From positions 1 to 64,000 of the forward strand of contig CALSCP010002362.1 of assembly GCA_943704425.1 (NCBI GenBank): a DNA stretch of 64,000 bases. Reading direction: 5' to 3'. A model generated the notes under the pieces. The model had not been told where the DNA came from and searched no databases. It saw only the letters and a list, made by a program, of their open reading frames with translations. Position 1 is the stretch's first letter; every line of letters starts with the position of its first letter. The translations under genes and the position numbers were made by a program. Below, piece after piece: positions 7,301 to 53,150 of the stretch. This DNA is from Ministeria vibrans ATCC 50519 (Eukaryota > Protista > Filasterea).

Positions 7301-9235
7301 CGCATTGAATAGGATCACAGGTCCAATCAACGGGCAACGCATCCCATGTCGCCGAAGTGCAGGAGACGGTGTACGAAGTCACATTGGAGCTAGTGTACCC
7401 TGGCAGACACGAGAAGACACAAGAGGCGTTCGAGAGCGAGCTTGTACATTGTGACTGAGAATTCTGCGGACCCACGGGGCGAGGCCCACACGCGGAACTT
7501 GTGCACACTTTGAGGGGGCCCACACGACCGTTGGCCTGGCACGACGCGGCAAATGTAGATTGACCACTCTGCCCGGTGATTTCAGTGTTCTCCGCACACG
7601 TGTACATGACTGAGTCACCAAAAAACAGTGTGTTCGACGATGCAGGGGAAGCCTGGTCGACAGTCGGCGGCGCGCCGCATTCAATGGGCAAGCAGGCGGG
7701 TAGAGGCGTGAGCAAGCCTGTGAAGCCATCGCAGCGTGCGGTGACGTTGGTGTTGGCAGGCGATCCGGCCAAACCGGTGCCAATCGCACATGAGTAGAGA
7801 ACGGATTCGCCCGCAACCAGAGCAACGGTTGATTGAGCAGCGGTGGCCAAGCCAACAGAGGCTAGAGGAATGCCGCACGAGACTGGTTCACAGCTTTGGA
7901 GAGGACCTACGGTCGCGTCGGCACGGCAACTCGCCGAGAAGGAGGGCCGCGAGATGTTACCATTGACGGCGAGTTGGGCGCCGCAAACGTACACGAGGGA
8001 ATCGCCGTAGACTAGGGAGGTCGCCTGCTGTGTACTCGTAGCGCCCGACACAATGGGCGGCATGCCACAGGGAAGAGGAACGCAGGCCGTGCTGGCAGGT
8101 GGTGCGAGTGAGCCGTCGGCAAGACAAGTGGTGCTCACCTGGGCTTGGCCGCCCACACGAGAGTGATAGCCCACTGCGCAGATGTACGTGACGACATCGT
8201 GTACGAACACCGCACTTGTTTGGTTGGTGAGGGCATTGGCCACTGTAGGGGGCGTGCCACATGTGATAGGCGTGCACGAGCGGACAGGGAGCTGACCGGC
8301 GGCACAGACGGATGTGAACGAGCGCACCGAGGGGCTGCCGTCCACACCAAAGTCGTCGCTACAAGTGTACGCCACGGTATCACCCTGGTAGAGAACGGCC
8401 GACGTGTTGGCGACCGCATTGGCAAGGGATGGCGGTGGACCACAGAGGACGGGCACGCAGGGAGACGACGTTGTCAGGGCGAACTGGCCCGAAATTAGAC
8501 AGGGTAGGTGGAAGGTGCGCACATCCGGTGTGGACACAGACAGTGCATACCCCGTTTGGCAGACATACGTTGCGTTTTCGCCAAAGATGACGTTGCGAGA
8601 GGGAGCGGAGGCGACGGCATGACTGACGGAGGGTGGTGCGCCACACGAAGCAACTGGGAAAGGCGATGAGTGTCGTGAATCGGAGGGGAGGGGGACATAT
8701 TCGGTACATAAATAGGCTCTTACCAGTGTCGCACGAGGTGGTTTTGTTGGAGAAGGAGAGAGAGCCACCCTGAAACGGAATCAACACCAATTAGTATTCC
8801 TTTGTGGGTTTTTCGTTGCGCTCGTTCGTACAGGCTTGAGCGCCACGCTGGCGGAAAGTCCAAGGGAGAGAGTCAACGCTGTAGCAGAATCAGAGATGAC
8901 TTGGACTGTCACAGCAATCGGGGTCGCCTGTAGCGCAGTCGGTTGTGAGCGAGAGAAAGACAAAAAAAAAAAGCGTTTAGTGGTTTTCATACCGTTGAAA
9001 TGTGAGCGAAATCACCCGGACACGGGGTTGCTCCACGTTCCCAGTCCACTGTAGTGTTCCACAGTCCCGCCTACAGAGGAGAAACAGGGGAGAGAAGGAG
9101 TTATTTAGGAGAGAGAGAAGAGATGGTGTGTGGAGAGAGAGCGACCTCGTTGGGTCCAATCCAGTCGACGGTGACGGTGGACACCACAGCAACCAACGAG
9201 GTGACTAGTGCTAATAATAGAAGACACTTGGTCAT
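389..9235 (-). CDS. Giant receptor tyrosine kinase: signal peptide, amnionless-like N-module, >20 Sushi/CCP repeats, ZU5-like domain (HFS), one TM helix, Tyr-rich juxtamembrane region, TK domain; multi-exon, N gap at 4720-4814
   Basis: Exon 1 9235-9146 MTKCLLLLALVTSLVAVVSTVTVDWIGPNE; exon 2 9070-8993; repeated CG.PP...Y.C..GY...C..DG.FS...C modules; TM IAVVAAAVICVFALAAVIMFVLW-RRRRR; kinase motifs GSGEFG, VAVK, HRDVAARN, DFG, LPVRWMAVE, SDVWSFGV; stop 389-391. Confidence 0.92.
4611..6586. repeat. Near-identical intragenic tandem duplication of Sushi blocks, period 1155 bp (385 aa)
   Basis: 4815-~5430 matches 5970-~6585 with a few substitutions; 4611-4719 matches again on the other side of the N gap. 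Confidence 0.9.
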
Positions 9236-18746: not shown

Positions 18747-20626
18747 TCACTTCAAGTCTGGCGCAACAAATGAAATATCATCCCAAGGATGTCTGTCAAA
18801 AAAGAAAACAAAAAGAAGAAAAAAAGTTATTTAGACGACAACACATCACCCATTTTAATGTGCTACCGGTAAAGGCCCTGCTTGAGACGCTTCTGGTCAA
18901 GATGATGGCCAATGAAGCCGATGCTCCGCCCGAGCACAAAAATGCCGTTGAGCGAGCCAATCTCAATGTACTCGCGGGCCTCCTCGGCGGTAAAGGCGCC
19001 ACAGGAGCGCAGCAGATCGACCATGCAGACGGCAATGGCGCCGTCGACATTGAGGATCAGGTTGGGCTTCTTTGTTGTCGTAATGGCCTCGACCGAACGC
19101 GCATAGTCAAGCAAAGGGGTCGCTGGAAAATTGTCCTTGCAGAACTGGCAGATGAGCTCCACTCGCTTGTCCGGATTGTCAATGCTCTTGACCTACATCA
19201 CCAAAAAGAAAAAAAANNNNNNNNNNNNNNNNNNNNNNNNNNNNNNNNNNNNNNNNNNNNNNNNNNNNNNNNNNNNNNNNNNNNNNNNNNNNNNNNNNNN
19301 NNNNNNNNNNNNNNNNNNNNNNNNNNNNNNNNNNNNNNNNNNNNNNNNNNNNNNNNNNNNNNNNNNNNNNNNNNNNNNNNNNNNNNNNNNNNNNNNNNNN
19401 NNNNNNNNNNNNNNNNNNNNNNNNNNNNNNNNNNNNNNNNNNNNNNNNNNNNNNNNNNNNNNNNNNNNNNNNNNNNNNNNNNNNNNNNNNNNNNNNNNNN
19501 NNNNNNNNNNNNNNNNNNNNNNNNNNNNNNNNNNNNNNNNNNNNNNNNNNNNNNNNNNNNNNNNNNNNNNNNNNNNNNNNNNNNNNNNNNNNNNNNNNNN
19601 NNNNNNNNNNNNNNNNNNNNNNNNNNNNNNNNNNNNNNNNNNNNNNNNNNNNNNNNNNNNNNNNNNNNNNNNNNNNNNNNNNNNNNNNNNNNNNNNNNNN
19701 NNNNNNNNNNNNNNNNNNNNNNNNNNNNNNNNNNNNNNNNNNNNNNNNNNNNNNNNNNNNNNNNNNNNNNNNNNNNNNNNNNNNNNNNNNNNNNNNNNNN
19801 NNNNNNNNNNNNNNNNNNNNNNNNNNNNNNNNNNNNNNNNNNNNNNNNNNNNNNNNNNNNNNNNNNNNNNNNNNNNNNNNNNNNNNNNNNNNNNNNNNNN
19901 NNNNNNNNNNNNNNNNNNNNNNNNNNNNNNNNNNNNNNNNNNNNNNNNNNNNNNNNNNNNNNNNNNNNNNNNNNNNNNNNNNNNNNNNNNNNNNNNNNNN
20001 NNNNNNNNNNNNNNNNNNNNNNNNNNNNNNNNNNNNNNNNNNNNNNNNNNNNNNNNNNNNNNNNNNNNNNNNNNNNNNNNNNNNNNNNNNNNNNNNNNNN
20101 NNNNNNNNNNNNNNNNNNAAAAAAAAAAAGTTCGAAAATGCACCATAATAATATCAAAAACAAACAAACAAAAAAAAACCTTCTCGCACCTTGAGACCAC
20201 CAACAGTGGCGGGACCAATGATAACAACACCCTTGTCGCGCGCAGCCTTGTTGAGACGGCGTGTGTCTCGCTCGGGGATACCCTCGGCAATGACAGCAAT
20301 GGCGCGGAAAACGCCCAGAGCCAGAGCCGAGTTGACGACGCCTGGGGCAGAGCGCAACGACGCAAAGTTGACGAGAACGGTGACATGCGGATGGCGCTCG
20401 ACTGCTTCGGCAACCGTCGTGTATACGGGCACCATGACCTCTTTGCGGCCCCAGTAGAAGCGCTGCGAGTGGTTTCCGCCAAAGGGGTACACCATGGCAG
20501 CGACGGAAGGGGTCGCGCGACCACAAGCCGTGTCAAAGTCAAACATGCCCTGGACGGCTCGCGGTTGCATCCCAAACACAATCGACGTGGTCGACGACGA
20601 GAAGAGCGGCTCAGGACCACTCGATA

Positions 20627-20657
<31 letters not shown>

Positions 20658-28920: not shown

Positions 28921-31020
28921 TCAACAAACTTCAAGAGAGCCATAACCGGTGATGGTTGTTGTCCCGGCTGTGGCAGCTTGGAGGCTTGTTTGGAGAGACT
29001 GGCACAGGGCCAAGCGAGTGTTGCCCGTGATGCTTGTGGTGGTGCCGATGGACGTCACGGAGGAAAGGAAGTTGATGGAGACGAGCGCCGTGTCCTGGAT
29101 CTGGAGGCTGTTGTCGATTGTTTGGAGGTTGTTGAATCCCTGAACACTGGTCAGAGCAGGAAAGTTGTTCAGGCGCAGAGAATGGGCACGCGAGAGGGAG
29201 GCGAAACCGGAAAAGGAGGTCAGTGATTGGATGAGAGTGAGTCGCAGTTCACCGTCAGTGACTCGAGTGAGGTTGTTGAACGAGAGAGACGAGAACGATG
29301 TAAAAGAACTGGCGAGACCACCTGATATGGTGAAGGAGGAAGTTTGAGTGAGGGCAGGGAATGAGAGAGTGGTGAGATCACGCATTGAACCGTCCCCAGT
29401 CGCAGAAATAGAAAAGGAGGAAGTCTGAGTGAGGGCGGGGAATGACATGGACGTGAGAAAACGCATTCCGTCATGCGCAGAGGCAGAAATAGAAAAGGAG
29501 GAAGTTTGAGTGAGGGCGGGGAATGACATCGAAGTGAGACGATACATTCCCTGATGCGCAGACGCAGAAAGAGAAAAGGAGGAAGTTTGAGTGAGGGCGG
29601 GAAATGACATGGAAGTGAGACCATGCATTCCGCCGGTATTTATAGACGCAGAAATAGAAAAGGAGGAAGTTTGAGTGAGGGCGGGGAATGACATGGACGT
29701 GAGAACACGCATTCCGTAATGCGCAGAGGCAGAAATAGAAAAGGAGGAAGTCTGAGAGAGGGCGGGGAATGACATGGAAGTGAGACCAATCATTCCGCTA
29801 GCTTCAGACGCAGAAATAGAAAACCCTGAAACCGTCTCCAACAACGGAAACGAAATTGTAGTCAAAAGTCCCATTTTCTGCGGCCCATCAGCAATACTGA
29901 AATCGCCGCCAACTTGAGTCAAGTTTGCCAATCCAAGAGATGTGATAGCAGTCATGCTTTTCACATCAAGCGCACCTCCAAGGGAACTCACGCCAAGTTC
30001 GTCCAGGCTCTGCAAACTACGGCAATCGTCCAGAACAAAGTCTCCGCCAATCACAATCACCTTCTCCAGTCCCGCAAAGTCAGTCAGACCATCCATATTG
30101 GTCATTTCAAAGTTATTGGTGACGTGGGTCAGGTTCATAGAGCCAAAAGAAGTCATGCCCAAAGCAGAGAAGCCCCGCAAAGTGCCGTTGATTTGAGTCA
30201 CATTGCCCATAAAGTCGCTGAGCACAATGAAGTCAACAATGCCTGAAAGAACCACGTCGCCCGCGATAAAGTCGCACTCCTTGAGGCGCTCAAGGGATGA
30301 AGCTGAGGTAAAGACGCCGCCGGGGCAAACATTCGTGAGACATTGCTCTGTGTTACACGTGGTAGTGTCGACCAGTGACGGACAAGCGGCGCCACCATTC
30401 TGGGGATGCGTCAGAATGCTACGAAAGCGAAACTGCTCACCGCCGCCACAGCTGGCCGAGCATGAGCTCCAGTTTCCAGGAAGACCAAGAACGCAGTCCA
30501 CTGGACATCCGTGTGTGTTGCAAGAGCGCATGTCCACTAGATTCACGGAGGCGTTGCATGATAGGCCGGGTATGTCGACGGTGACATTGCGGGAGCGGTT
30601 CTGTGTACCACCGTCGCAAAGGACCGAACAAAGCGAGTAATCCGAGTATTCAGAGTACTCGCAGGTGCCGGGAGTTGGCGCCGGTGGTGTTGAAGTTGTG
30701 TTGGTCGTGTTCAGACCAGCATGGTCAAGTAGCAGAGCGGTCGTGAAGGAGAGACTCGTCAGGCTGCGGCGCAGCTCTGTGTTCTCCGCGCGCAGAGTCG
30801 CGACATCTGATTGCAGCGTGGCAATCGCGGCAATTGCAGCATGCAAATTTGTCTCCGTGGCGCCGTCCTTGAGCATGATAGTGCCGCCCGTCGCCGCCTG
30901 GAGTACGAGGTCGTTGTTGATATCGCCGACGTACGACACCCCGATTGCTTCCGCTGGCAAGTCGATGGCGCACACCTTGCCGACGAGCAACAAAACGCAC
31001 GGCACGATAGTAAGAAGCAT
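28921..31020 (-). CDS. Secreted protein A: signal peptide, cubilin-NTD-like motif plus coiled coil, 2 TSP1, receptor-L/LRR-like solenoid with 27-aa variable repeats; intronless
   Basis: MLLTIVPCVLLLVGKVCA; LQSDVATLRAENTELRRSL; WSSCSASCGGGEQFRFR...NGGAACP; CPGGVFTSASSLERLKECDFIAG; repeats of MSFPALTQTSSFSISA; no TM helix. Confidence 0.85.
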   Translation of the reverse strand: MLLTIVPCVLLLVGKVCAIDLPAEAIGVSYVGDINNDLVLQAATGGTIMLKDGATETNLHAAIAAIATLQSDVATLRAENTELRRSLTSLSFTTALLLDHAGLNTTNTTSTPPAPTPGTCEYSEYSDYSLCSVLCDGGTQNRSRNVTVDIPGLSCNASVNLVDMRSCNTHGCPVDCVLGLPGNWSSCSASCGGGEQFRFRSILTHPQNGGAACPSLVDTTTCNTEQCLTNVCPGGVFTSASSLERLKECDFIAGDVVLSGIVDFIVLSDFMGNVTQINGTLRGFSALGMTSFGSMNLTHVTNNFEMTNMDGLTDFAGLEKVIVIGGDFVLDDCRSLQSLDELGVSSLGGALDVKSMTAITSLGLANLTQVGGDFSIADGPQKMGLLTTISFPLLETVSGFSISASEASGMIGLTSMSFPALSQTSSFSISASAHYGMRVLTSMSFPALTQTSSFSISASINTGGMHGLTSMSFPALTQTSSFSLSASAHQGMYRLTSMSFPALTQTSSFSISASAHDGMRFLTSMSFPALTQTSSFSISATGDGSMRDLTTLSFPALTQTSSFTISGGLASSFTSFSSLSFNNLTRVTDGELRLTLIQSLTSFSGFASLSRAHSLRLNNFPALTSVQGFNNLQTIDNSLQIQDTALVSINFLSSVTSIGTTTSITGNTRLALCQSLQTSLQAATAGTTTITGYGSLEVC
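29335..29830 (-). repeat. 81-nt (27-aa) coding tandem repeat, about 6 units (one of 84 nt)
   Basis: gaagt(t/c)tgagtgagggc.gggaatga recurs at 29339, 29420, 29501 and onward. Confidence 0.95.
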
Positions 31021-32968
31021 GATTCCCCTACTACAAGCAAATCATGAGAGAGAGCCACAAGTTGCGAAACAAAAATCAACAGCGCCTTCTCACACACCCG
31101 CTAGTTCGAAACGGTCTCAAATTATACTAGCAATGATGGGCCACAGACTTGAATAGTTTACAAACAAAGGAAAGAGGGAAGAAAGGTTGGGATCAAGTGA
31201 GGTGACAAGCAAGAAGGCTGAAGAAGAAAACTCGGTCCCATTGAACCTACCGCACTTCAACAAGTGCCACTGTCCACTGACCACATATGAGACATACCCC
31301 AAGCAGAAGCGATGAATGAACGTAGAATTCCAGGCGGCACGAACGAAATGGAGAAAAGCAGAATGGAAGCAGAATGTCGAAAAGTCGCAAGACGTCGCCT
31401 CCGCCTGGCAAAAGGCTATTTTCGCATTCGCCCGCCACCAACGCGTCACGCGAGGTTGAGGGATTGGTCGCGTCCTTGAATGAGCGCACATCTTTTGACG
31501 AAAGTTGCGTTTTCAGCATAAAGGAAGGAATAAAACCCATCCCCAGCAACTGACGACCACCATCGTCAAAGTCAGAGATACACACACCCGTCACTTACAA
31601 CAGTGGGTGGGGCGGAAGCGGTTTACTTGTGCAGAATTTGCAGAATTCACAGACGACGATTCTTTCAGCTTTATCAAAAAACAAGCGAGAGTCGCTCCCA
31701 AACAAAATCCTAAGCCTCCGGGACAAGTCGCACGCCACCATTGTAACACAAACACTATATACAAGCCCCGGCGCCATGCGGCATCGTTATTAGATGGTCG
31801 TGAATGTATTGTCGTTTCAGTTTGGCGACACCAGAGCGAAAAATTCATTCGAACAACTTCAGCGAGTCAGGGAGCAATACGGACAAGCTGAACAATGACA
31901 TGTACGCTTTGGGCTTACTGTGTGTGATAGAGTCCGCGCAGGTTCTTCAAACGTCCAGAGTTGATGAAAAAAGGAGACTCCCCAAGCCCAGAGCAGTTGA
32001 TATTTTTTACGATTCTAGCCAGGCCGCACTCTTTTTTCACCCCTCCCAATCTTCTCAGCGTGCTTCACTGTCTCACTGAAGGTAGGCGGATGTTGTGAGC
32101 GTGTGAGAGAGAGAGAATCGGGGGGTTGAAGTTTTTTTTGTTGCGATTTGAAAACCTCCGCTGGAGCGGTTCCTCTGTCCTCAGTTTTGCAACATATGTT
32201 ATATCTATCAGTGTGGAGGTGAACCTGTCGGGTTTTGGAAGCAGCGAGGCTTGTAGTGGAGCGAAAAGTTTCACACGGTTTTTTGAAGTTTTTTTTCCTT
32301 GCTTGTGCTTGTCTTTGGACAGACTGTGTGCTCAGTGTGTGGGGTTGGGAGAGCGGAATCTAACACTCAACCCAATGTTTTTTGTGTGTGGTGGTCTTTT
32401 CGAGTGGACCTGACAAAAAGCCAAAGAAGGTCCTTCGACAAAGATTTTATTGAAAAACTTGCTTACATACCGTCGCTGTGTGACTTTTTATTTGTTTGGC
32501 ACTCGTTTTCTTGTTTGTCGAAATACGCTAAAGTAACAGCGAACTCAATTTTCGTTTTTTCCCAAGGTTGAGTTATTCCGTAACGCATTCGTTGAGGCTG
32601 GATAACAAAAATTCATCAAAAATGCCCCGATTCGCATGTACTTCTGGTAAGAGTTGGCGGAGGGTTCAGTTAAGATTTCGATATATACTGTTGGCTCGTA
32701 CCAGGCGTTGTGTGGTGGACAAAGGGGATCCCTGTCACATTCCCTGCGTCGATCGGTTGTCTCTGGTTCCAATATTGGCTGTTCTTTCTTTGTTGTGTCC
32801 TATTTGATACAGTCTTTCCCTGTGGGGTAAACGCCAAAGACATTGTACAGGGGTCTTCTCGCCCAGTTCTTGGTACCTGGGTCTTGCGCGCGAATTTGTG
32901 ACTTGTTGTTGAATCTGCAAGAGTTTTCCCCTGCTTACACTCTCTGTAATCACGTAGCGAACTTTGTC

Positions 32969-35224
32969 ATGGTCGCGACTCTCCTGTTTGCGGCGACCGC
33001 GACCGCCGACAGCGACAAAGCCTTCATCGCGACTGTTGACGGGAATCTGCAGCTCAGTGCGGCACCGAACCGCTCCGTCATCGTCGAAGGTGTTGGCGAC
33101 CTGGCGGCGAACCTGACGACACTGCATGTCGGTAACGAGGAGCTGCGCACAGCCAACGACGAGCTCCGCGCAATGCTGCATGCGGTGGAGGTGAATCTGA
33201 CGCAAGTCACATCTCTTATCTCTACCGTGGCGACGCTTGTGGTGGACGTCACGGAACTGCGCGCAGAGAACACAGAATTGCGCGCAGAGAACACCGAGCT
33301 CCGTCGCAGCCTGACGAGTCTCTCGTTCACTACCACCCTGCTGCTCGACCATGTCGGACTGAACACGACCAATACGACTACACCACCGGCGCCAACTCCC
33401 GGCACTTGCGCGTATTCTGAGTACTCGGACTATTCTCTCTGCTCCGCCCTCTGTGACGGCGGTACGCAGGGCCGCTCCCGCAATGTGACCGTCGACATTC
33501 CCGGCTTGTCGTGCAATGGTACCGCCAATCTGGTGGATACTCGCTCTTGTAATACACACGCATGCGCGGTGGACTGTGTGCTTGGTGCCCCCGGCAACTG
33601 GAGCGAATGCTCGGCGACGTGTGGCGGCGGACAAAAATTTCGCTTCCGCCCCATTCTCATGCATCCCCAGAACGGTGGCGTCGCCTGTCCGTCTCTGGTT
33701 GACACGACCTCGTGCAACACACAAGTTTGCCTGACCACCATCTGCCCCGGCGGCGTCTTCACGACAGCATCTTCTCTCCAACGTCTCAAGGAGTGTGACT
33801 TTATCGCCGGCGACGTAGTTCTCTCTGGCATGGTTGATGTGATTGTCCTCAGTGACTTTATGGGCAATGTCACGCAAATTAACGGGACGCTCCGTGGATT
33901 CTCGGCGGTGGGTATCACATCATTTGGCTTGATGAACCTGACCCACATCACCAGCAACTTTGAGATGATTAATATGGACGGTCTCACTGACTTTGCAGGA
34001 CTAGAGAAAGTGGTGGTGATTGGTGGAGATTTTATCTTGGATGACTGTCGCTCTTTGGTTAATATCACCGGCCTTGGAGTGACATCTATTGGAGGCAAGT
34101 TGGATGTAAAAAACATGCCGGCGATGACCACACTTGGACTGGCGAATCTGACGGAGATCGCCGGTGACTTTACGCTCTCGGACGGGCCACAAAAAATGGA
34201 ACTTCTTGTGTCCATTGCTTTCAGCCGGCTGAGCACGACCTCGGGCTTTTCTATAACTATTTCGTTCACGCGTGGAATGGAGTTGCTCGCAGTCATGTCG
34301 TTCCCTGCCCTCACTTCGACTTCGTCCTTTACCATTAATGTGGGGGGTTCAGGACTATATGTACTTACAACCATTTCTTTCCCCGTTCTCATGTCAACGT
34401 CGGCCTTCATTATTTATGCTGGAAGTTCAGGAATGGCGGATCTCACAACCATCTCGTTCCCTGACCTCGTGTCAACGTCATCCTTTTCCATTTCTACCAG
34501 TTCAGGAGGAATGGCACAACTCACAACCATGTCGTTCCCTGTCCTCATGTCAACGTCATCCTTTTCCATCTCCTCCACGCATATTGGCGGAATGCAGCGA
34601 CTCGCAACAATATCTTTCCCTGCTCTCTCATCAACGTCGTCATTTTCCATTTCCGCGGGGGAAACTACCTCAATGATGGTTCTCACAACCATCTCGTTTC
34701 CTGTTCTAACGTCAACATCGACTTTTTCCATTTCTGCGACCGTAAGTTCTAGTATGCCAGCTCTCTCAACCCTATATTTCCCTGCCCTCTCATCAGCTGC
34801 ATCCTTCTCCATTGCTTCTTCTGCAACTGCCCCCGTTTTCCCTTCCCTTCTAAGCCTTTTTTCATTCAACAATCTCACACGGGTGTCCGACGGACAACTT
34901 TTTCTCTCTCGATGCGATTCTCTCACTTCCATTTCCGGCTTTACGTCACTCTCACGCGCCCATTCGCTCCGAATGGAATATCTCCCTGCCCTGACCACCA
35001 TCCAAGCACTCACCTCTCTGCAAACAATCGACAACAGTCTGATTGTTCAAAACACCGCCCTTGCCTCGGTCGACTTTCTCTCCTCTGTGACATCTATCGG
35101 CACGACCACATCGATCACGAGCAACTCTCGATTGGCTCTGTGTCAGTCGCTGCAGTCGAGCCTCCAAAGTGCGACCGCCGGGACGACGACCATCAGTGGC
35201 TACGGCTCTCTTGATGCGTGCTAG
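32969..35224 (+). CDS. Secreted protein B, divergently oriented paralog of A with a different N-terminus and about 8 more diverged repeats (an upstream signal exon is possible)
   Basis: MVATLLFAATATA-DSDKAFIATVDGNLQLSAAPNRSVIVEG; long heptad region; TSP1 and L-domain core closely similar to A; ends GYGSLDAC* versus GYGSLEVC*. Confidence 0.85.
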   Translation: MVATLLFAATATADSDKAFIATVDGNLQLSAAPNRSVIVEGVGDLAANLTTLHVGNEELRTANDELRAMLHAVEVNLTQVTSLISTVATLVVDVTELRAENTELRAENTELRRSLTSLSFTTTLLLDHVGLNTTNTTTPPAPTPGTCAYSEYSDYSLCSALCDGGTQGRSRNVTVDIPGLSCNGTANLVDTRSCNTHACAVDCVLGAPGNWSECSATCGGGQKFRFRPILMHPQNGGVACPSLVDTTSCNTQVCLTTICPGGVFTTASSLQRLKECDFIAGDVVLSGMVDVIVLSDFMGNVTQINGTLRGFSAVGITSFGLMNLTHITSNFEMINMDGLTDFAGLEKVVVIGGDFILDDCRSLVNITGLGVTSIGGKLDVKNMPAMTTLGLANLTEIAGDFTLSDGPQKMELLVSIAFSRLSTTSGFSITISFTRGMELLAVMSFPALTSTSSFTINVGGSGLYVLTTISFPVLMSTSAFIIYAGSSGMADLTTISFPDLVSTSSFSISTSSGGMAQLTTMSFPVLMSTSSFSISSTHIGGMQRLATISFPALSSTSSFSISAGETTSMMVLTTISFPVLTSTSTFSISATVSSSMPALSTLYFPALSSAASFSIASSATAPVFPSLLSLFSFNNLTRVSDGQLFLSRCDSLTSISGFTSLSRAHSLRMEYLPALTTIQALTSLQTIDNSLIVQNTALASVDFLSSVTSIGTTTSITSNSRLALCQSLQSSLQSATAGTTTISGYGSLDAC

Positions 35225-35532
35225 GGATTATGGGGTTTATTAAAGTTTTCGAGTCGTTTTCTGCGTTTAGTCAAGGTAGTGTCGACATGCGGCAATGTTG
35301 ATGTTGTCAAAACAGCAGTGGTCGTAGGTGACGATGAAGTTGTTCTTCTTCTTGTGTGTGTGGACAGGGATCGCAAGAAGAAGAGAGGGCGAGTATGGCG
35401 TTGGGGTAAGGTCGAGTTGGTGCCGGAATCGAAAGTGAGGTCTAGAGCCGGAATAGTTGCGAGTATACGAAGCAGAAAAATTACCCACTCCTGTGCTTCA
35501 AAAGATCGTATTGGTGTAATCTAATAAAATTA

Positions 35533-35870
35533 CTACACCTTCATTGCCCCCCTCTTCGTTCCTTCCACCCCTAAAGTAGGTCTCTGCTCAAACTCGAGCA
35601 GCTCAACGCCGAGATCACGAATATTCGCGCTTGGGATCAACGCACTCAATCTTTCCTCAAGAACCGCAAACGAGGGCCGATCTGCCGCTTCTCCACTCCA
35701 GCACGTTATCAAAATCAAAAACACATTCTGCAGACAAGTCAATAAATGTCAGCCACAACAATCAACAACAACAGTCAATCAATGTCAGCCACAACAATCA
35801 AAACACTACCAAACACTGATTTTTGGACACCCAGGTGGCAAGCAGTGGGAAGACGCCTTATCTGCTTTGT
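35533..35870 (-). other. Tandem duplicate of the GPCR-kinase 3' end: intact second terminal exon (35727-35533) plus a relic of the penultimate exon
   Basis: NVFLILITCWSGEAADRPSFAVLEERLSALI...RDLGVELLEFEQR...MKV* parallels 36224-36033; upstream LPPGCPK relic is followed by atcagt instead of the gtcagt donor. Confidence 0.8.
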
Positions 35871-36032
35871 GATATACTTTAACGAGTAGGAAAAGAGTTT
35901 TCAACAAAATACAGCGCAAAGAAAGGGGATAATTCTTAGACTAAAGCAGACCAACAGCAACCAATAATACCTCATGAAACCCATCAAACCCGGTTCTGAT
36001 CTTTAACAAAATTCCATCAAGGGACCTTTTAC

Positions 36033-39000
36033 TCACACCTTAACAACCCCTTTTGTGGCATCCACACCCAACACCGCCCGCTGCTCAAACTGCAGCAACT
36101 CAGCGCCAAGGTCGCGGGCACTAGCACGTGTGATCAGCGCAGATAAGCGTTCCTCAAGAGCCACAAACGAGGGCCGCTCTGCCGCCTCTGCACTCCAGCA
36201 CGCTTTCAAAATTGAAAACACGTTCTGTAGAGACGAGTTGAACGTACACTTGTCAGCTAAAAAAAATTTCAACAACAACATTAACACTGACCTTCGGACA
36301 TCCAGGCGGCAGCTCAAGCCTGCGACCGGTTTGCACAAACGGTACAATGCCGTTGATAGGCACATCGCGGTACGGCCGGACCTTGCCAAACGTGAACAGC
36401 TCCCACACAAGGACACCAAATGACCACTACATACAGTGTTACACTCAAGACACCTGCTACCGTGCCATCACTTACCACATCACTCTTCTCAAGCAGGAAC
36501 ACCGCCTCCGTCAGCGCCTCCACTGGCATCCAGCGCATTGGCAGCTGACTCCCGTGCGGAATCTTGTAGCGGTCGTGACCTCGCTCAAGGCGCACCGCCA
36601 AGCCAAAGTCGCTCACCTTGACCACATTCTGTGCATATACAAGGCAGTTGCGCGCCGCAAGGTCGCAGTGCAGCACACCATTCTCCGCAAGAAAGCCCAT
36701 GGCCGACGCCACCTGCACAGCCACGCCAATCAATTCCATAGGCGACACCTCAAGACGGTGGCGTTGCTTAAAGAGGCGCCGCACAAAGTTGCGCAGGTCA
36801 CCGTACATGGCCAGCTCGGTCACAAGAAGCCACGGTTCGCGGTCCATGCATACACCGGCCAGTTTGACAATACCCGCGTGTTTCGCACCCACATCCGCCA
36901 GTAGCTGTGCCTCGCGCACAAAATCGTCACGATCGCGCTGAGACGCATTCGCATTGAGTGTCTTCACCGCGACAAGCTCTTCCTTCGTCGACGCAAGAAT
37001 GACAAACCCAAAATTGCCTTTGCCGATCTCCTCCTCAAACTCCAGGCGCGAACGGTCAAACTACAAAGATTAGCACAAATTCTTAATCATAACTCTTCTT
37101 CCCTCCCATCCAATGAAAATTACCTGACTTTCCACCATGAGTGCATTCATGTCGTGGCGCTCGTCATCGTACTCGCCCTCGTCATCGGCGACCTCGACAA
37201 GCTTGGGCATTGCTTCAAACACAGCCTTGTGCCGCTGGTGTTCCTGCGCCAGACTCGCTCGTGTCTTCGTCTTGAGCGACAGCGACTGGACAATCAACAA
37301 GACACGCTCTGACTGCTGCGCCATCGCTACACCATCCTCCTCGAAAGCACCACCGCCCTCCTCCATATCCTCCACGCGGTTACCGTACACAGTATCGCCA
37401 TCGACGGGCTCTTCGCGATTCCCATATTCGGCGACCAACGACGCCGGTAGGTAGCCAGTTCCGTCACTGTTGCCGTACAGGGTTCCTTGGTAATCGCTGC
37501 CAGTCGCGTTGGAGTACCCTGCGCCCATGTAGCCGTAGCCCTCATGCTCATCGTCCTCGTCCTCGTCCTTGTCAACCAGACCGTAGTCGTTTTCGCCGCC
37601 GGCCACTAAGGAATGGAGATCGCCCTCCTCAGCGGCATCCTGGCTAGGCTCGCGCATACTCATTGTCTCTGCGAAACTGAGTAGTTGAATGGAGCGCTTT
37701 CGCCCAAGCAAGTCTGGATGCACAGAGGCAGAAGCGGACGATGCCTTTGGCTGCAGGCCAGCATGCATGCCACCCTCAACAGTCATGTCGTCGCATGCTT
37801 CGACGGAGTCTGGAATTCCCGACGCGCGCCCGCCGCCCTCGGACCACTCGTTGCTGTGACTGAAGCGCTGTCGCACATGAGCGATCGCATTCTTCCACTC
37901 GCGGCGCGGTCGTCCACTCAGGATGAAGAGAACCGCCAATAAGGCACCCTGTAGCGTGTTGAAGATCACAAACAAGTACCACAGGGCCACCTGCTGCGCT
38001 GCAATTGCCACTATAAATAAGGAAAGAATTAGAGAGAAAAGCGGTTTATTCGATGTCACAGTATGATAATAGAAGCGACATTCTCATTACGTGGTGTGAA
38101 AAAAAACGTGACAAACTTACCGTAGGCAAAGATCCAGGTGAGACCAAGACACGCGACAATGCCAAAGAAAACGCGCACCCTCGACTTGTCACTGGCGGCC
38201 TTGTCAGTAGCACGCGAGGTGCGAGCCAGATGATAGAAGACCGCAACCGTCACAATCAGGTTGTACACGAGTACGCCGGCGATAGGAACAAGAAAGCCAA
38301 TGATCAGTCCCCACTTGGAGTGAATCCAACAGTGATTCTCGCCGCCAAACTGAACACCGCCCTGGGTGGCCACATCGACAAGGGTAATCACGAGGGTAGC
38401 GACCGCTGCGCTGGCCCAGCCAACGATGAAGTAGAAGCGCAACGAGCGGCCCTGACCAAACACCTTGACAAGCAGAAAGTACAGGTTGTGCGCAATGCAT
38501 GCCATCCATATGAATGAGGCCATGAGAGCAAAGTACAGGAGTATGCCGACAGCGCGACAGACTGACGTGTTCTGAGTCTTGGTGATGCCGGCGAGAAAAA
38601 TCAAGTTGACGGCAAACAGCGCCACTGCCAGGTTTGCAATCATGGCAATGGGCTGCGTGCGGATCTTCTTGAGCAGCGCGTACGAGAGAACAATAAACAA
38701 ACTTGCCACCATTGACAGTACGCATCCCAGGTAAGTGAGCACCGAGAGAGCGCGTGCGTCTGTCTCGCTCAACTGGGTCGCAAGTGGCGAGTTCCAGCCG
38801 GCGAGAATGGCAAACGAGGTCATATAGTGGCAGCGACGACAGCGGACAAGCGCCTGTGAATCAAGCTGCTTGCAGCGGCAGACTGTCTTGGTCGCGTGGC
38901 GCGTGTGTGCACGGCAGAGAGACGAAGACCACTGGCGCTTCCAGCGATCCCACTGGACACAGAGACGATCGTCGGAAAACGACTCGTTGCGATGTTGCAG

Positions 39001-42000
39001 CGTTACGTCAATGGCGACTTCGTCGGGCAGATCCGTGACAGTGAGGTTCCCAAGCGAGAAGCCCACAATGTTGGAGTCGACCTTGTCAGACTGTGTGTCG
39101 TCCGTCGAGACAAACGGGTTCGAGTGGCTAACGAGAAAGCGCGACGACAAACAGCTTTCGTTGAGACCGAGGTGAGCAACAAAACCACGCGGCACAACAA
39201 GTGTCTCGTTCAGACCCGTGTACGAACTTTCCACAAGCGAAGCGTTTTGGCGACGCGCAAATTGAGCAGCCAAGCGACCTTGGACCGTGAACTGCGAGCT
39301 TCTGTCGCAGGAGACACGCGATGACGCCGCCCCAACAAATTGGTCAATGAGTTCGGGCGCGGCGCTGCTCTGGTTCGACTGGCGCAGTGTGTTGAGGGCC
39401 GAGGGCTCAAGTAGATTGCTCAGCACCGCAAAGGACGATGTCAGGGCACCAGTCGCCAGGTCCGCCTGTTCTCCACTGCTGGTGTCATTGCCCACGAGCG
39501 AATCGAGGACAGAGCCAAGCATTGACACGATGGTGTTGGCAGATGAGGCGGTGTGGTTGGTGTCGTCGAGCCAAGTGTTGTTATTGGTGAGTTGTAGAAG
39601 GGGGATGGTGGCTGCGGCTGCGGCTGCGACCGAACCGCTTGTGGTGGTTTTATGCAGAGTGAGGGCAGTGAGAAGACACGTGACGGGAGCACTGCCACCG
39701 GATCCGGCCGTGTCGACAGTGCCCGCAGTGAAGGCAGCGGGGTTGATAAAGGCGGACACGCACAACTGGGGATTGTTGCCGAGTCGCGCGTCGCCAGTGA
39801 TGTTCTGCAGACGAGCGAGGTCAAGTGCAATCAGACTCGGGAGCGATTCGGCAATAAGGGAGCCGTCAATATGCGCGAGGTGGGGCATGATCAAGTCGAC
39901 AACGCGCGTCGCCGGTGAGTCGACAACACGGATATCACCGCGTACGCGACGCAACAAAGGCACTTGAACTGACTCGACTGACGTGGTGTTGATCGTGAGA
40001 GGGCCGTACAGATCACCGAGCGTGGCCAAGGGTGCGACCGAGCGCACATCCACTCCAGAAAGATGAAGCCCTCCAAAAATGTGCGAGCAGCCAGCGTAGG
40101 CGTCGACACGCGCTTGTGAGGTGACAACTGTCTCGACGCGGCAGTCGCTTTGACACTGGGGCCCCACAACCTCGGCGATACAGGTGCAGTTGTAGCGGTT
40201 CGTGTTCGCGTCGTCTTCGGCACAAGTGCCATCGTTCTCACAGGGTGACGATGCGCACTCGTCAATGTTCGACTCGCACTGGGCGCCGGTGAAGCCCGGA
40301 GAGCACACGCAAGAGAAGGCGTCAAGAGCATTCACACATGTGCCGGCATTGATGCATGGTGACGAGGAGCACTCATCGACTGCGAGTAGAGCCAGCTGTG
40401 CCGATGAAGCAGCGGTGGAGCCACACGAGCTGGTTGAGGAGAGAGGAACGCAGGTGCTGAGGCGACGACGGCCCGTGCTCAGTGGGCTCTCGGCCAGTGT
40501 CCAGGTGGACGGACTGTCAAGCGGCGCGGCGACATATACGAGACCATCGACAGTAGTTGCGTTTGCGTCGCGCGCAATGTGGATTTCGACAGCGCGCGCA
40601 AAGTCGGAGCCATTGAGCGACGGCACCCACAAGGAGTACACAATCTGCTGTGCCTTGACGGCGTTTGAGGGGAGTGTGGGTACTGCCAAGGCCGCCACAA
40701 TGTCAGCAAGGACAACAGTTCCGTTCGCTGTGATGGCGTTTGCTGGTATGATGACGGCGAGAGCGCCAAACGAAAGGGTTCCGCCTGCAGGCCCAACGAT
40801 GGTGCCGGTCTGTTCGCAAGCGGCACCAACATAGTTCGCGGCGCACACACACGTCGTACTGTTGATACCGTCAACACATGTGGCCCCGTTGGCACACGTG
40901 CTGGATGCACACTCATCAATGTTCGACTCGCACGCGATGCCTGTGAAACCGGCCAGACATGGGATTTTCACGCCACAAGTGGGACCCGTATAGAGGGTAT
41001 TGCAGGTGCACAAAAACCCAGCCACGCTGTCTGTGCACGAACCGCCGTTTGAACACGGCGACGAAGCACACTCGTCAACGTTGACATCGCACAATGTACC
41101 AGTCCAGCTCGAGTCGCATGTGCACGAGAAGGCGGAGTGGGTATCGACACAAACAGCGCCGTTATGGCAAGGCGACGAAGCACACTCGTTGATGGCGTCA
41201 TCGCAAAACTGACCGGTGAATCCTGGCGCACAGAAACACATAGTGCTGTTGGCGGCACAGGTTCCATCGTTTGCGCACGGTGTAGTGGTACAGTTGGTGG
41301 CGCAGGGGCTCGCATCGAGAATAATGATAATGTCGTCGGCAAAGCTGAGCAATGCGTTGAGACCAAACTCGATGCGTTCGAACGACGCGGTTTGTTGTAG
41401 CACTGACTCAGCAGTGTAGTCGACGAGGGCGCCCGAGCAAGGGAGTGATTGGTGAAGCCAGTTTGTCGGGTCGAGGAAAACCCCGTTGCCAGCCGTGTTG
41501 GTGAAGACAGCGAGGGCGCTGTCGCAGGAAGTTCCGGTCCGCGTCGTCGGGCACGCACAGATGTACGAAGACAGAGAAGCAATGCAAGTGCCACCGTTTG
41601 CGCACGGGGACGAGGCGCACGGGTCTGTGCATGTGTGGTTCGAGCTGCGAAAAATGGGCAAATTGAGTATCTGGGTTGAGCTTCGGTCTAAGAGATCGAA
41701 AATGGTGGCATTGAATTCTCTTATTGACTTACGCATGGGTACTGAACAGAATGCCAGTATTGGGCTCAAAAGTCGCGTACGTATCCGTTGTAAGGGCCAT
41801 TCCCGAAGCTGTCGCAGATGCCCTCAGAGAAACCGCCGCCGAAGAGGCGACAACGACCAAGTCTCCGGAGCATGGGATCGCTCCTGCGTTCCAGTTGGCA
41901 CTCACATCCCAAAATCTCGAGGAGTTGCTCGAAAAGAGTCGAGTGTCGGCTCTTACGGGCACGAGCAGGCAGAGGAGAAACAGGGCAACTGAAGTCGTGA

Positions 42001-42016
42001 GTTTGGGAGACAACAT
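36033..42016 (-). CDS. Adhesion GPCR-tyrosine kinase fusion: signal peptide, 2 amnionless-like modules, about 7 EGF, ZU5-like, L-domain, GAIN/GPS, secretin-type 7TM, Tyr-rich tail, non-RD TK. Exons 42016-41733, 41644-38121, 38010-37124, 37060-36476, 36426-36292, 36224-36033
   Basis: All five introns are GT-AG and phase-compatible by manual splicing; GPS CVQWD...WSSSLC...TVCRC...MTSFAIL; TM motifs LTYLGCVLS, SFIWMACIAHNLY, VGW, CWI, LGLTWIF, LFVIFNTLQG; kinase GKGNFG, VAVK, HCDLAARN, DFG, LPMRWMPVE. Confidence 0.88.
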
Positions 42017-50995: not shown

Positions 50996-51014
50996 CTTGT
51001 CAATATTTTCAAAA

Positions 51015-51449: not shown

Positions 51450-53150
51450 TGATACAGTCACCACGCGAAGACACAGCCAGACCGCCTTGCAAACTCGACC
51501 GAAACTCTAGAGGTAACATGGGAGAACAGTGGCAGGTCATAGTGCTGTGTCGACGCTATAACCAGTGAGGCAATCGCAATGGTACGTCATACAGTGGAGG
51601 CTTCAGAAAAAAGAAATAGAAGAAATTAATTTGAAAAAAGAAATAATAATAATAATAATAATAAAATAATAATAATTAAAATTTTCATTATTGTAAAAGT
51701 ACAACTCTCGATTCTCTATTAATTATTTTCCTATTGTAAAATTAATAATTATTATAAAATTAAGAAGAAGAATACAACCCATTTATTAATGAGCATACAG
51801 TCATTAATAATAACAACAAAATACAAAATAACAAAATCAAACCAACTATTACAAATTAAAGGAAAGGGGTACGGGGAAAAGCTTGGTTTCCCCCTATTAC
51901 AAATCAGAGAAAAGGGGTTACTAGGTTGTCCAATTAAAAAAAGAAAAAAAACTATTATACAGCGTTACTAAATACTTTAACTTTACTGTTATTCTACTAC
52001 CTATACTCTAAAGAGGTTACTAAAGTGGTTACTAAAGGTTACTCAGGTTACTAAAGTATCAGGAAATCCACCAGAATACATAGCTCCCATACTGCCTCCG
52101 TTTTCTTTGCGACCCAAACTTTTGCAACTTACTCCTTTGTATATAGTTTTATTATGCGTTCCATGTTCTTTATTATTAATTGAAACATAAAATCCAATAA
52201 CATTTGTTATTACCGCTAATTGGCAACTCTGATGAACCCATGTTGCCATATCGTCGAAGTCGGAAACAACTCCGACCAAGCGTGGGACAAGCAGGACTGT
52301 CCAGTTGAGTGGAAATGCTAAAGAAACCAGCGTTTGGGGTGTCGTCATCCGAGTGGAGAAGGGTACATCGCCCTGAAACCGAATTAGTCAGATCAAATAC
52401 CAGTTCCTTGACTCCAAATGAATAGCACAGCATCCTGTCAATGCTACATTCATCGCTAGATGGAGCAATACCAATGGAGGCATTCGAGAGGAACATCGAC
52501 TCTTGAACAAGTGGCGAAGGACCATAGTAAATTCGGTTGCCATTTGAGCAAAAACGGTACATCGACCTCCAGTCTTTGCCAAGCTTTTCTTCCTCAAGTT
52601 GCTGCACTTTGGCAGTCAGTGACCCCACAGTTTGAGTCAGACTCTCCATTTGAGCCAAGATATCCGTGCTGTTGACAAAAACACTGCCGTTTTCCGCAGG
52701 AGAAATAACGACGTTGCCATCGACGTTCTCAATAGTTGCAACCTCGGAGGCATCACTACTCAGACACATGACGCCCAAGAACAGGGCGGAAATCACAAGA
52801 ACCTGAGCGTAGGACGGATTCTCGGTTATTTCTGCTCCACTGACTGATTTCTCGGAGATTTCTCACCTTGAAATGCATAGTGACGACTACTCCGTACTTC
52901 GTACGGAGTACGTGGTAGGCGGTGGTACGTTCGACAAGGCAGAAATAACGTTGTACTCTTAGGGAGAGCAAATTATCTGTTATTCAACACCTGATTTTAC
53001 AGTACTCCTCGTAATGAATTAACAATTATTATTGATTCAACAATAATAATTATTATTAGAAGAAGAATACATCCCATTTATTCATGATACAGTCACCAGA
53101 TCTACAACAAAAGCACAAGTGCAATCGCTATCCAGTGAGGTAATCGCAAT
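51431..53150 (+). repeat. Dispersed direct repeats at 51431-51463/51554-51580, 51764-51802 and 53059-53098/53126-53150
   Basis: aatacaXcccat...atgatacagtcacca and cgcta..ccagtgaggYaatcgcaat recur in the same order. Confidence 0.7.
52176..52878 (-). CDS. Secreted protein C: signal peptide, cubilin-NTD-like motif, coiled coil, unknown Cys-containing domain; exons 52878-52867 and 52802-52176
   Basis: MHFK|VLVISALFLGVMCLSSDA; IENVDGNVVISPAENGSVFVNSTDILAQMESLTQTVGSLTAKVQQLEEEKL. Confidence 0.75.

Follow-up and report, generated by a model that had tools for sequence, protein, structure and literature searches.

The window, that is, the whole stretch of 64,000 nucleotides analysed here, encodes two genuine extracellular modules in a cubam-like arrangement, whose pairing is putative and appears doubtful. 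The first, here called the socket, is carried on the ectodomains of kinase receptors and, judged from sequence profiles and a predicted fold, is a beta-helix domain homologous to beta-helix 1 of amnionless (AMN). The second, here called the plug, is a beta-strand cassette at the N-terminus of a family of secreted proteins. Within these 64 kb are two socket genes and plug genes at two independent loci (Table 1). The two modules expanded separately and most likely work independently, a tentative reading to which a probability of about 0.45 is given.

Table 1. Socket and plug features of the window.
Feature	Positions	Strand	Description
GPCR-tyrosine-kinase gene	36100..42016	-	spliced RNA contigs and Pfam
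GPCR-kinase exons	42016-41733, 41644-38121, 38010-37124, 37060-36476, 36426-36292, 36224 downward	-	
GPCR-kinase signal peptide	42016-41948	-	exon 1; module 1 directly after
Socket module 1	41735..41947	-	about 71 residues; three-faced beta-helix (AF2 model)
Socket module 2	41311..41529	-	degenerate copy between two EGF domains; NW...PC.G motif
RTK signal peptide and socket module	8724..9235	-	exons 9235-9146, 9070-8993, 8927-8832, 8769-8724
S1	28921..31020	-	signal peptide, plug cassette, coiled coil, two TSP1, Receptor-L-like repeats (translation, Pfam)
S2	32969..35224	+	signal peptide, plug cassette, coiled coil, two TSP1, Receptor-L-like repeats
S3	52176..52878	-	small secreted protein; exon 1 52878-52867, exon 2 from 52802

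The socket module and its relatives

Spliced RNA contigs of 5751 and 5781 nt, from two runs, connect all exons of the GPCR-kinase gene, and one 5.75-kb transcript spans module 1, the 7TM region and the kinase. The introns, the first at 41732-41645 and four others, are all GT-AG on the minus strand, and the product contains EGF, 7tm_2 and PK_Tyr_Ser-Thr domains (Pfam). The splice model of the receptor tyrosine kinase (RTK) gene is predicted, with GT-AG boundaries read from DNA alone. Downstream of its module, Pfam identified Sushi repeats and a kinase domain (8768-1312). Exons were searched separately rather than as joined spliced protein models.

Pfam Amnionless (PF14828) was the sole match to exon 1 of the GPCR-kinase gene (E 2e-4, 20.6 bits, profile positions 10-67). 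Module 1 falls below the curated cut-off of 30.4 bits, which is set for the whole protein, because only 57 of the 442 profile positions are present. Three independent modules had this family as their sole or top match, with their alignments in register (E 2e-4, 0.016 and 0.11), and no window protein matched it beyond profile position 78 or so. With a profile free of any module of this genome, module 1 scored 36.9 bits, whereas shuffles reached 11.2 at most; the genome's other modules scored 28.7-41.7 bits with it, except module 2 (8.5 bits). A profile built from this genome's modules alone ranked the amnionless chain 6gje_A first in the PDB (E 0.024), and a 46-module profile matched it at E 6.8e-6.

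All motifs quoted in an earlier note on this DNA were found where it had placed them, and its claim that the GPCR-kinase and the RTK bear the same N-terminal module was borne out by module-profile matches. It had also described a second copy in the GPCR-kinase. The motif of module 2 is indeed there, but the copy is degenerate, scoring 8.5-9.4 bits with profiles built without it (2 of 1200 shuffles were as high) and giving no Pfam Amnionless match. In the RTK, exons 2, 3 and 4, scored one by one, match the module profile in order (positions 10-33, 36-60 and 65-73) at 22.7, 5.3 and 1.0 bits, respectively, with a shuffle maximum of 8.1; exon 2 is the only one of them significant alone (genome-wide E 8e-5).

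The AF2 model of module 1 from a 46-row alignment had a pLDDT of 85.2 and superseded an unusable one from an 8-row alignment (pLDDT 52). A VIA structure search of 48,161 chains returned 6gje_A as the best match (Z 5.7, rmsd 1.8 Å, 61 of 71 residues; runner-up Z 3.4), the model superposing on AMN residues 26-88. The Foldseek comparison proposed in the earlier note likewise placed 6gje_A on top (prob 0.94, TM 0.64).

Profile searches of the genome found further sockets beyond the window in at least five other genes and on the ectodomains of at least four more kinases, and every socket gene found encodes a tyrosine kinase domain. The socket signature, W..NW..G..PC.GD ... C, covers about 75 residues with a conserved Cys pair. 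At least four receptor genes have the socket at the very N-terminus; on contigs C1426 and C1708, sockets are internal or triplicated.

Beta-helix 1 of AMN (6GJE chain A; PF14828) is a right-handed three-faced beta-helix of about 70 residues, and module 1 resembles it in this fold, in its start (W..NW..(R/G)..PC.G), in the second Cys that closes it and in its position directly after the signal peptide. Beyond this, AMN has a beta-helix 2 with helical caps, then a Cys-rich linker, a SEA domain, a lone TM helix and an endocytic tail of the FxNPxF type, whereas in the window receptors EGF or Sushi repeats come next and then a 7TM-kinase or TM-kinase body. The window receptors are domain-sharing relatives of amnionless, not orthologues. 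A small amnionless-type protein was not found in this genome. One Sushi/EGF protein of 1455 residues on C2457, which has a TM helix and a FANPIF tail, was considered as an AMN orthologue and rejected, its weak match to the C-terminal part of Pfam Amnionless (E 0.03) being judged low-complexity or tail similarity.

In a library of 1.8 billion proteins, 954 matched the module profile at E <= 1e-3, and most of the best 150 are giant proteins poor in Cys that have 3-11 copies each. The statistically strongest relative of the pooled module profile is RemA (PDB 8GL6 chain D, residues 891-962; E 3.6e-13). Such bacterial giant-adhesin repeats, like the start of G8 (PF10162), share with sockets a unit of about 75 residues and the signature W.G...W...NW...P..D.V.I; unlike sockets, the bacterial units lack the PC...C cysteine pair, stand in tandem and are not on kinases. 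An ESM Atlas query with the module gave, as leads only, bacterial and phage clusters without names, G8 being at rank 19. No window module matches G8 even at E <= 10, and a genuine G8 domain on contig C2792 matches G8 (5e-13) and not Amnionless. The socket fold is not amnionless-specific, being a tandem repeat in hundreds of giant bacterial proteins and overlapping the G8 start. The amnionless likeness proposed in the earlier note thus holds at the domain level (Pfam, PDB profile, predicted fold) but not as a specific one. Its caveat of a generic cap proved right too: bacterial adhesin repeats and the G8 start are part of the broad superfamily of the unit.

Two proteins found with the module profile, P0060 from the choanoflagellate Choanoeca perplexa and P0045 from marine metatranscriptomes, score 33.5 and 43.9 bits, respectively, and pass the Pfam Amnionless threshold of 30.4. 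P0060 also aligns directly to a C1708 module (31% identity, E 8.7e-6). These amnionless-like membrane proteins have the same PC-type module as the sockets; like amnionless and unlike the window receptors, each has a single TM helix and a tail of the NPxF/NPxY type, with two modules.

The plug family of secreted proteins

S1, S2 and S3 share a signal peptide, a cassette and a coiled coil, as had been claimed. The S1 cassette (30966-30838) is divergent and still recovered by the plug profile. That of S2 (33008-33124) is two-stranded and followed by a long coiled coil to about 33322; N-termini nearly identical to that of S2 are found on contigs C1339 and C1706. The S3 cassette (52748-52638) precedes a short coiled coil, after which comes a C-terminal part that contains cysteine (plug profile, translation) and has no Pfam family match; the S3 splice site is inferred from GT-AG alone. 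S1 and S2 are paralogues with identical C-terminal architecture, and S3 alone differs; the different C-terminal domains announced in the earlier note are therefore found in S3, but not between S1 and S2. A search with the whole S2 protein gave generic TSP1 and Receptor-L matches only, with no orthologue.

Genome-wide, the plug profile has 27 matches, with signal peptides directly upstream, and the counts suggested in the earlier note put both the socket and the plug motifs far above chance. The plug family comprises at least 24 genes, whose products have a signal peptide and a conserved cassette of beta strands, then a short coiled coil bearing a trimerisation motif, and lastly varied C-terminal domains. 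The cassette begins 3-8 residues past the signal-peptide cut, has two or three short beta strands and follows the consensus h-x-N-x-[DN]-G-N-L-V-L-x-P-A-x-N-x-S-V-x-V-x-G-x-L-x-V-N-G. It is followed by a coiled coil of about 25 residues, then often by a C-x-C pair (8 of 24 plugs) and then by EGF repeats (several plugs, including L041 and L044; Pfam), DUF285 repeats or TSP1 with Receptor-L domains. One plug protein has a short Gly-X-Y run. The C-terminus of another (L048), taken by eye as fibrinogen-like, was dropped for want of Pfam support. The motif [RK]-h-x-x-h-E occurs in the coiled coil of 16 of the 24 plugs, against 1.4% in shuffles, and R-hxxhE is known to specify parallel trimers (PMC3653964). 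Plug proteins probably form trimers, to judge from these motifs.

Relatives of the plugs were not found outside this organism by protein searches with a single plug or with the plug alignment. The former (region 1-62, protein library) gave no match, and the latter gave only P0196, which matches the N-terminus of the C1339 plug and comes from the same or a near-identical organism. A PHROGs search with all 24 plugs also gave no match. ESM Atlas returned an arthropod hypothetical cluster (0.90), a Peptidase_S74-named cluster, YadA_stalk and BppL_N, which are leads only, with a trimeric-fibre flavour. In collectins, ficolins and tenascins, an N-terminal cysteine segment and a coiled-coil or collagen stalk form trimers that display variable C-terminal recognition domains. 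Plugs resemble them in layout, having a short N-terminal segment with cysteines and a stalk before variable heads; unlike them, plugs have a conserved beta cassette that precedes the coiled coil.

The earlier note had likened the secreted N-termini to cubilin. Single plug sequences and three family profiles, one of them beta-only, matched no PDB chain, including those of cubilin in 6GJE, at E <= 10, a search of low power for a beta motif of 30 residues, and the proposed likeness was not upheld in sequence. It is one of architecture only: as in the N-terminal region of cubilin (6GJE chains B-D), a free N-terminus and short beta strands with Gly/Asn turns precede a coiled coil, and EGF repeats follow in several of the probably trimeric plugs. 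Unlike cubilin, plugs have no CUB domains, many are two-stranded only, and their N-terminus arises by signal peptidase cleavage, not by a furin-type cut. The only CUB-domain locus of the genome (C408) has no plug match.

Possible relations between the two modules

To judge from their motifs, the cassette and coiled coil of the plugs would form parallel, disulfide-knotted trimers, each displaying a variable binding domain in triplicate, as in collectins, ficolins or tenascins. If the two modules work independently, these trimers would act as secreted binders of several valencies or as matrix proteins, and the kinases would use the beta-helix cap as a structural or ligand-contact domain, a role that its bacterial and G8 relatives also appear to have. 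Several features weigh against this independence. The plug layout is exactly that of a trimeric beta-helix with a coiled coil, the partner type of amnionless beta-helix 1. The extreme N-terminal sockets would suit a distal docking site, all socket genes found are kinases, and socket and plug genes occur together in one 64-kb window. The trimerisation is itself predicted from motifs alone.

Given its close architectural resemblance to cubam, direct docking is a serious alternative, though a clearly less probable one. Three plug N-termini would intertwine into a short beta-helix, which would sit on the amnionless-like module at its open base and thereby anchor interchangeable trimers to kinases. 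The contact face, again with some doubt, may be the N-terminal face of the plug beta-helix, with a hydrophobic centre. In sequence and predicted fold, the socket comes nearest to amnionless beta-helix 1. That domain binds cubilin, and its Met69 and Leu71 are part of the hydrophobic centre of the cubilin-binding base (PMC6283879). Met and Leu are kept at these positions in module 1 (HMMER alignment to 6gje_A), but the conserved hydrophobic residues are also plain beta-helix core residues. On the plug side, V, I or L stands five residues before the conserved Gly in 19 of the 24 plugs, where human cubilin presumably has Met44, in agreement with the published numbering of Met44, Pro103 and Asn105. 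The continuation of several plugs into EGF repeats, as in cubilin, also favours docking.

Against docking stand the failure of the three plug profiles to match cubilin, in an underpowered search, and the occurrence of the socket fold as an ordinary tandem repeat in bacterial proteins without such a partner. The internal or triplicated sockets, the CUB locus without a plug match and the failure to find either a small amnionless-type protein in this genome or plug relatives outside this organism also count against it. Gene order is ambiguous. S2 lies tail to tail with the GPCR-kinase, and a plug gene on contig C1920 lies tail to tail with another kinase gene, but two such neighbours compare with about 0.5 expected by chance; plug-kinase adjacency is anecdotal and statistically not compelling. 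No socket was found within the 1.5-kb flanks of plug genes.

It is rather improbable that S1, S2 and S3 are ligands or co-receptors that bind the adjacent kinases through their C-terminal domains, the cassette serving only to trimerise them and so to cluster and activate the receptors. The genes adjoin in the window, the coiled coil has a trimer-type motif, and the variable C-terminal domains (TSP1, EGF, Receptor-L-like) belong to recognised types of binding domain. Ligand-induced clustering is the standard mode of receptor tyrosine kinase activation. However, the adjacency is limited to one or two loci, the interaction itself is putative, and the kinase-only occurrence of the amnionless-type cap is left unexplained. 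Finally, a chance or compositional match, with modules that are not real domains, would suit the single Pfam matches under the cut-off and the weakness of module 2 and RTK exons 3-4 alone, but is hardly credible against the independent-profile score of module 1, its confident model with a specific top structural match, the recurrence of both families and the transcription and splicing of the GPCR-kinase as predicted; for module 1 and for the plug family overall it is refuted.

Significance

To our knowledge, the one role described for amnionless is that of membrane anchor for cubilin in animals, and its beta-helix 1 is known only to dock a trimeric beta-helix with a coiled coil. Since no paper linking amnionless to choanoflagellates was found, three observations appear to be undescribed: an amnionless beta-helix domain at the tip of tyrosine-kinase receptors in a protist, choanoflagellate amnionless-type membrane proteins above the Pfam threshold, and an amnionless fold common to hundreds of bacterial adhesin repeats. 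Taken together, the kinase, choanoflagellate and bacterial occurrences set the origin of a cubam part before animals and assign it to a broader family. The plugs make up a new family of secreted, probably trimeric proteins that has expanded in this lineage and bears modular heads.

It is conceivable, with odds well below even, that beta-helix-on-beta-helix docking is older than animals and that at least two dozen secreted trimers plug combinatorially into RTK and GPCR-kinase caps. If so, interchangeable sensing domains would couple soluble recognition directly to phosphotyrosine signalling, a modular receptor specificity distinct from classical ligand-RTK pairs.

Gene models in the window

The window is eukaryotic sequence with long exons and GT-AG introns. 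Its genes have a holozoan look, with tyrosine kinases whose ectodomains carry Sushi, EGF and TSP1 domains, and with a secretin-type 7TM region. The adhesion-type GPCR fused to a tyrosine kinase (GPCR-kinase) is represented by RNA-like contigs of 5751 and 5781 nt, from two runs of one study, in which five introns are removed, and these contigs support the gene model. All five introns are GT-AG on the minus strand, the one at 41732-41645 separating exon 1 from the large exon. Three of the five were confirmed by shorter contigs from a second study, and the stretch is present unspliced in a DNA run. The spliced contigs therefore place socket module 1, the 7TM region and the kinase on one transcript, and the gene is expressed as modelled. 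Fusions of a GPCR to a tyrosine kinase are known from choanoflagellates and sponges (PMC12716839).

Features of the window and further genes carrying the socket, an amnionless-like beta-helix module of about 75 residues; S1 to S3 are secreted proteins
Feature	Location	Strand	Remarks
GPCR-kinase	42016 to about 36100	minus	RNA-like contigs
Socket module 1	41947-41735	minus	About 71 residues, after GPCR-kinase signal peptide; W..NW..G..PC.GD, then alternating hydrophobic strands
Socket module 2	41529-41311	minus	Degenerate copy between two EGF domains
RTK with Sushi repeats	9235 to 1312 and beyond	minus	Pfam domain matches; splice model from GT-AG sites only
S1	31020-28921	minus	TSP1 + Receptor-L-like repeats
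S2	32969-35224	plus	TSP1 + Receptor-L-like repeats
S3	starts 52878	minus	Splice model from GT-AG sites only
Further socket, kinase gene	C1426		Internal, between two Sushi domains; genome profile search
Further sockets, three copies	C1708		3371-residue ORF; genome profile search
Further socket gene	C1664		Near-copy of C1708 gene; genome profile search
Further socket, kinase gene	C1890		Directly behind signal peptide; genome profile search
Further socket, second gene	C1664		Apparently near N-terminus, signal peptide not seen; kinase domain about 6 kb downstream

S1 and S2 are paralogues in divergent orientation. Both contain runs of a repeat of about 27 residues (29335-29830 and 34200-34850) between their Receptor-L-like parts, with a consensus around L-T-S-M-S-F-P-A-L-T-Q-T-S-S-F-S-I-S-A; bacterial relatives of this repeat part carry a T9SS sorting domain. 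Elsewhere, at 18001-20000, the G+C fraction falls to 0.29 and long ORFs occur in several frames on both strands (18770-20827), which has the appearance of a gap in the assembly or of simple low-complexity sequence.

The socket and its relation to amnionless

The earlier note had placed one module at the start of both receptor kinases, with a second copy in the GPCR-kinase, and both points were borne out. The closing Cys of module 1 is encoded in the following exon. In the second receptor kinase (RTK) the socket is split across four small exons, each of which was searched singly. Against a socket profile without RTK sequence, exon 2 matched positions 10-33 (22.7 bits; shuffle maximum 8.1), exon 3 positions 36-60 (5.3 bits) and exon 4 positions 65-73 (1.0 bit), so that the three matches are collinear. 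Genome-wide searches covered an assembly of 29.7 Mb in 2860 contigs, and the socket count is a lower bound because the search prefilter misses short exons; many sockets are divided into exons of about 26 residues. In every socket gene found, a tyrosine-kinase domain lies downstream, on the strand of the socket; among the genes found, only kinases carry the socket.

The C1426 gene (locus L017, G000:C1426:1-10000, ORFs 8905-4409 and 4646-1263, minus strand) encodes a very large RTK whose ectodomain holds Sushi domains, one internal socket and dozens of EGF repeats, as well as two segments that by eye resemble cupredoxin/plastocyanin-type domains, unusual for an ectodomain. The giant RTK genes at G000:C1708:5103-14394 and G000:C1664:67172-71268, with EGF-socket-Sushi cassettes and a kinase downstream, are nearly identical and are either separately assembled alleles or the products of a recent duplication.

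At the level of the domain, the socket is homologous to amnionless beta-helix 1. In Pfam at E <= 10, Amnionless was the sole match of module 1 (E 2e-4), over profile positions 10-67 of 442, which the C1426 and C1708 sockets also matched (E 0.016 and 0.11). A genuine G8 domain of the same genome, taken as a control, matched G8 at 5e-13 and not Amnionless. A profile built from this genome's sockets alone ranked human amnionless (6gje_A) first in PDB, at E 0.024. With a profile lacking any module of this genome, module 1 scored 36.9 bits (shuffle maximum 11.2) and module 2 only 8.5 bits.

The structural comparison gave the same top chain. The AlphaFold2 model of module 1 (46-row alignment, no templates) was confident, with pLDDT 85.2 and pTM 0.71. 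Foldseek against 350,542 PDB chains placed 6gje_A on top (prob 0.94, query TM 0.64, E 0.13). Exhaustive VIA alignment against 48,161 representative chains also ranked it first (Z 5.7, rmsd 1.8 Å over 61 residues), with model residues 9-71 superposed on AMN 26-88; the runner-up was an autotransporter beta-helix at Z 3.4. The 6GJE structure was released in December 2018, after the structure cut-off for training of the AlphaFold weights used, and the match should therefore not reflect a memorised structure.

The fold itself is generic. In a full-database HMMER run over 1.84 billion proteins, a five-module profile matched 954 at E <= 1e-3, and the best 150 of these are mostly giant, Cys-poor proteins in which the unit occurs 3-11 times. 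Five of the proteins, P0002, P0003, P0007, P0020 and P0085, lie in genome or metagenome assemblies that look prokaryotic. A 46-module profile (6 from this genome, 2 from P0045 and 38 bacterial) gave E 3.6e-13 for RemA, an adhesin of Flavobacterium, and E 6.8e-6 for amnionless beta-helix 1. The generic G8/autotransporter-like cap, which the earlier note had set against its proposal, is thus partly what was found: bacterial surface proteins commonly carry the fold as tandem repeats, and it overlaps the beginning of the G8 domain. The PC...C cysteine pair, by contrast, is shared by amnionless and the eukaryotic socket subgroup and is specific to that subgroup, as is a better score for amnionless than for RemA when only this genome's modules are used.

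The loci L066, L069 (NCBI assembly GCA_028711905.1), L070, L071 and L072, from genome or metagenome assemblies, hold apparently bacterial proteins of 1500-4300 residues with up to 11 tandem copies of the socket-type unit of about 75 residues. Precomputed Pfam gave only faint Amnionless or G8 matches on them, so this bacterial repeat family seems to be without a Pfam model of its own.

Amnionless beta-helix 1 has an open hydrophobic base that binds cubilin and is followed by a two-helix-capped beta-helix 2, a Cys-rich linker, a SEA domain and a TM helix (PMC6283879). Only the first of these elements is present in the receptors described here, which are therefore not amnionless orthologues; the description of them as amnionless-like holds for beta-helix 1 and fails for the rest.

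Amnionless-type proteins nevertheless seem to exist outside animals. The 954 matches include P0060 (from the choanoflagellate Choanoeca perplexa) and P0045 (marine metatranscriptome, L067:29-1456), each of which combines a pair of PC-type modules with a single TM helix and a tail of NPxF/NPxY type, and both pass the Pfam Amnionless cut-off of 30.4 bits (33.5 and 43.9). P0060 aligned directly with a C1708 module at 31% identity (E 8.7e-6). Per protein, P0060, P0045 and P0066 (Diaphanoeca grandis, also a choanoflagellate) have two or three PC-type modules. A separate ORF of this genome (L016, G000:C2457:103000-112999, 9875-5508, minus) encodes a 1455-residue protein that has Sushi and laminin-type EGF repeats, a single TM helix, a C-terminal FANPIF motif and a weak match to the Amnionless profile tail (E 0.03). 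The protein could be an endocytic receptor whose sorting signal is of the amnionless type.

The plug family and cubilin

S1, S2 and S3 share an N-terminal beta cassette followed by a coiled coil (the plug), as had been noticed, and it starts 3-8 residues past the predicted signal-peptide cut. A genome search with the three-sequence profile enlarged the family to 27 matches, at least 22 of them clear members with a hydrophobic signal peptide just upstream, and the family size is a minimum figure. Its consensus reads h-x-N-x-[DN]-G-[ND]-[LI]-V-[LI]-x-P-A-x-N-x-S-V-x-V-x-G; most plugs continue with x-L-x-V-N-G-x-x-V-x-T and then a coiled coil of about 25 residues. The third strand is present in members such as the C1676 and C1813 genes and absent from S2, S3 and a few others, and S1 is the most divergent member. 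The cassette matched no family in Pfam or PHROGs, and no relatives in other organisms were found within the limits of a word-seeded search.

The motif [RK]-h-x-x-h-E occurs in 16 of 24 plugs (1.4% in shuffles), one match sitting in the beta region and not in the coil, and C-x-C stands at the coil end in 8/24. R-hxxhE specifies parallel three-stranded coiled coils across many families (PMC3653964). Judged from these motifs, the plug is likely a disulfide-knotted parallel trimer.

Behind the coil the family is varied, with TSP1 + Receptor-L-like repeats (S1, S2 and a C1706 member), EGF repeats, DUF285 repeats with PKD-like parts, a short Gly-X-Y run or, in several members, Cys-containing regions of no family. 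The idea of different C-terminal domains thus holds for the family but not for S1 and S2, which are of one type. The DUF285 repeats, whose family takes its name from Mycoplasma proteins, were found at E 1e-66 to 1e-84 behind plug and coiled coil in the secreted eukaryotic proteins of L047 (G000:C1813) and L053 (G000:C1920).

Neither single plugs nor the 3-row, 24-row and beta-only profiles matched cubilin at E <= 10 in a search of every PDB chain, cubilin 26-135 of 6GJE among them; this negative is weak, since a 30-residue beta motif at about 20% identity gives little power. The only PDB matches were coiled coils or weak, insignificant beta-helix proteins. The proposal that the secreted N-termini are cubilin-like by sequence accordingly gained nothing from this low-power test. 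At C408, the only CUB locus in the genome, there was no plug match.

Human cubilin reads M-A-T-E-R-G-N-L-V-F and onward. We take it to align with the plug consensus through a hydrophobic residue five positions ahead of the Gly, then G-N-L-V-[LF], and a similar strand spacing. This sequence agrees with the numbering of Met44, Pro103 and Asn105 in PMC6283879; the position that would correspond to Met44 is V, I or L in 19/24 plugs. Cubilin and the plugs have in common a free N-terminus, a beta cassette and a trimer-type coiled coil, and EGF repeats follow in some plugs. The architectural parallel is real; the relation is one of architecture, and homology is not established.

Plugs and sockets as neighbours

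Two socket genes share the window with two independent plug loci, and about 1 kb separates the end of S2 from the 3' end of the GPCR-kinase. Outside the window, only one plug gene lies tail to tail with a kinase gene, on C1920 (plug minus from 53825, kinase 51014-51805 plus). About 0.5 plug-kinase neighbours are expected by chance from 24 plug loci and some 110 kinase genes (a rough estimate from 169 kinase-domain matches) in 29.7 Mb. No socket was found within 1.5 kb of any other plug. The co-location is suggestive but weak. At G000:C1920:51014-53825, the plug gene, with EGF and DUF285 repeats, and the neighbouring tyrosine-kinase gene are arranged like S2 and the GPCR-kinase.

Both module families exist, and the reading we favour, with a probability of roughly 0.45, is that they function independently. 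Cubam-like docking, a putative seating of plug trimers on sockets as cubilin trimers seat on amnionless, draws on the beta-helix 1 homology, the architectural parallel and the co-location in the window; it is a less probable but serious alternative. Less probable still are neighbouring ligand-receptor pairs that bind via other domains, the cassette only trimerising and clustering. That the module resemblance is an artefact is very improbable beside the profile and structure results.

In the literature searched, no paper was found that joins amnionless and choanoflagellates, and work joining cubilin and choanoflagellates appears unrelated by its titles and abstracts. Amnionless is absent from the paper on GPCRs of animal relatives. 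Within this literature, the domain-level socket findings and the plug family appear undescribed.

The plug family probably forms parallel trimers displaying variable domains. If plugs and sockets function independently, these trimers would act as multivalent secreted binders, and the socket cap would be a structural or ligand-contact domain of the receptor kinases.
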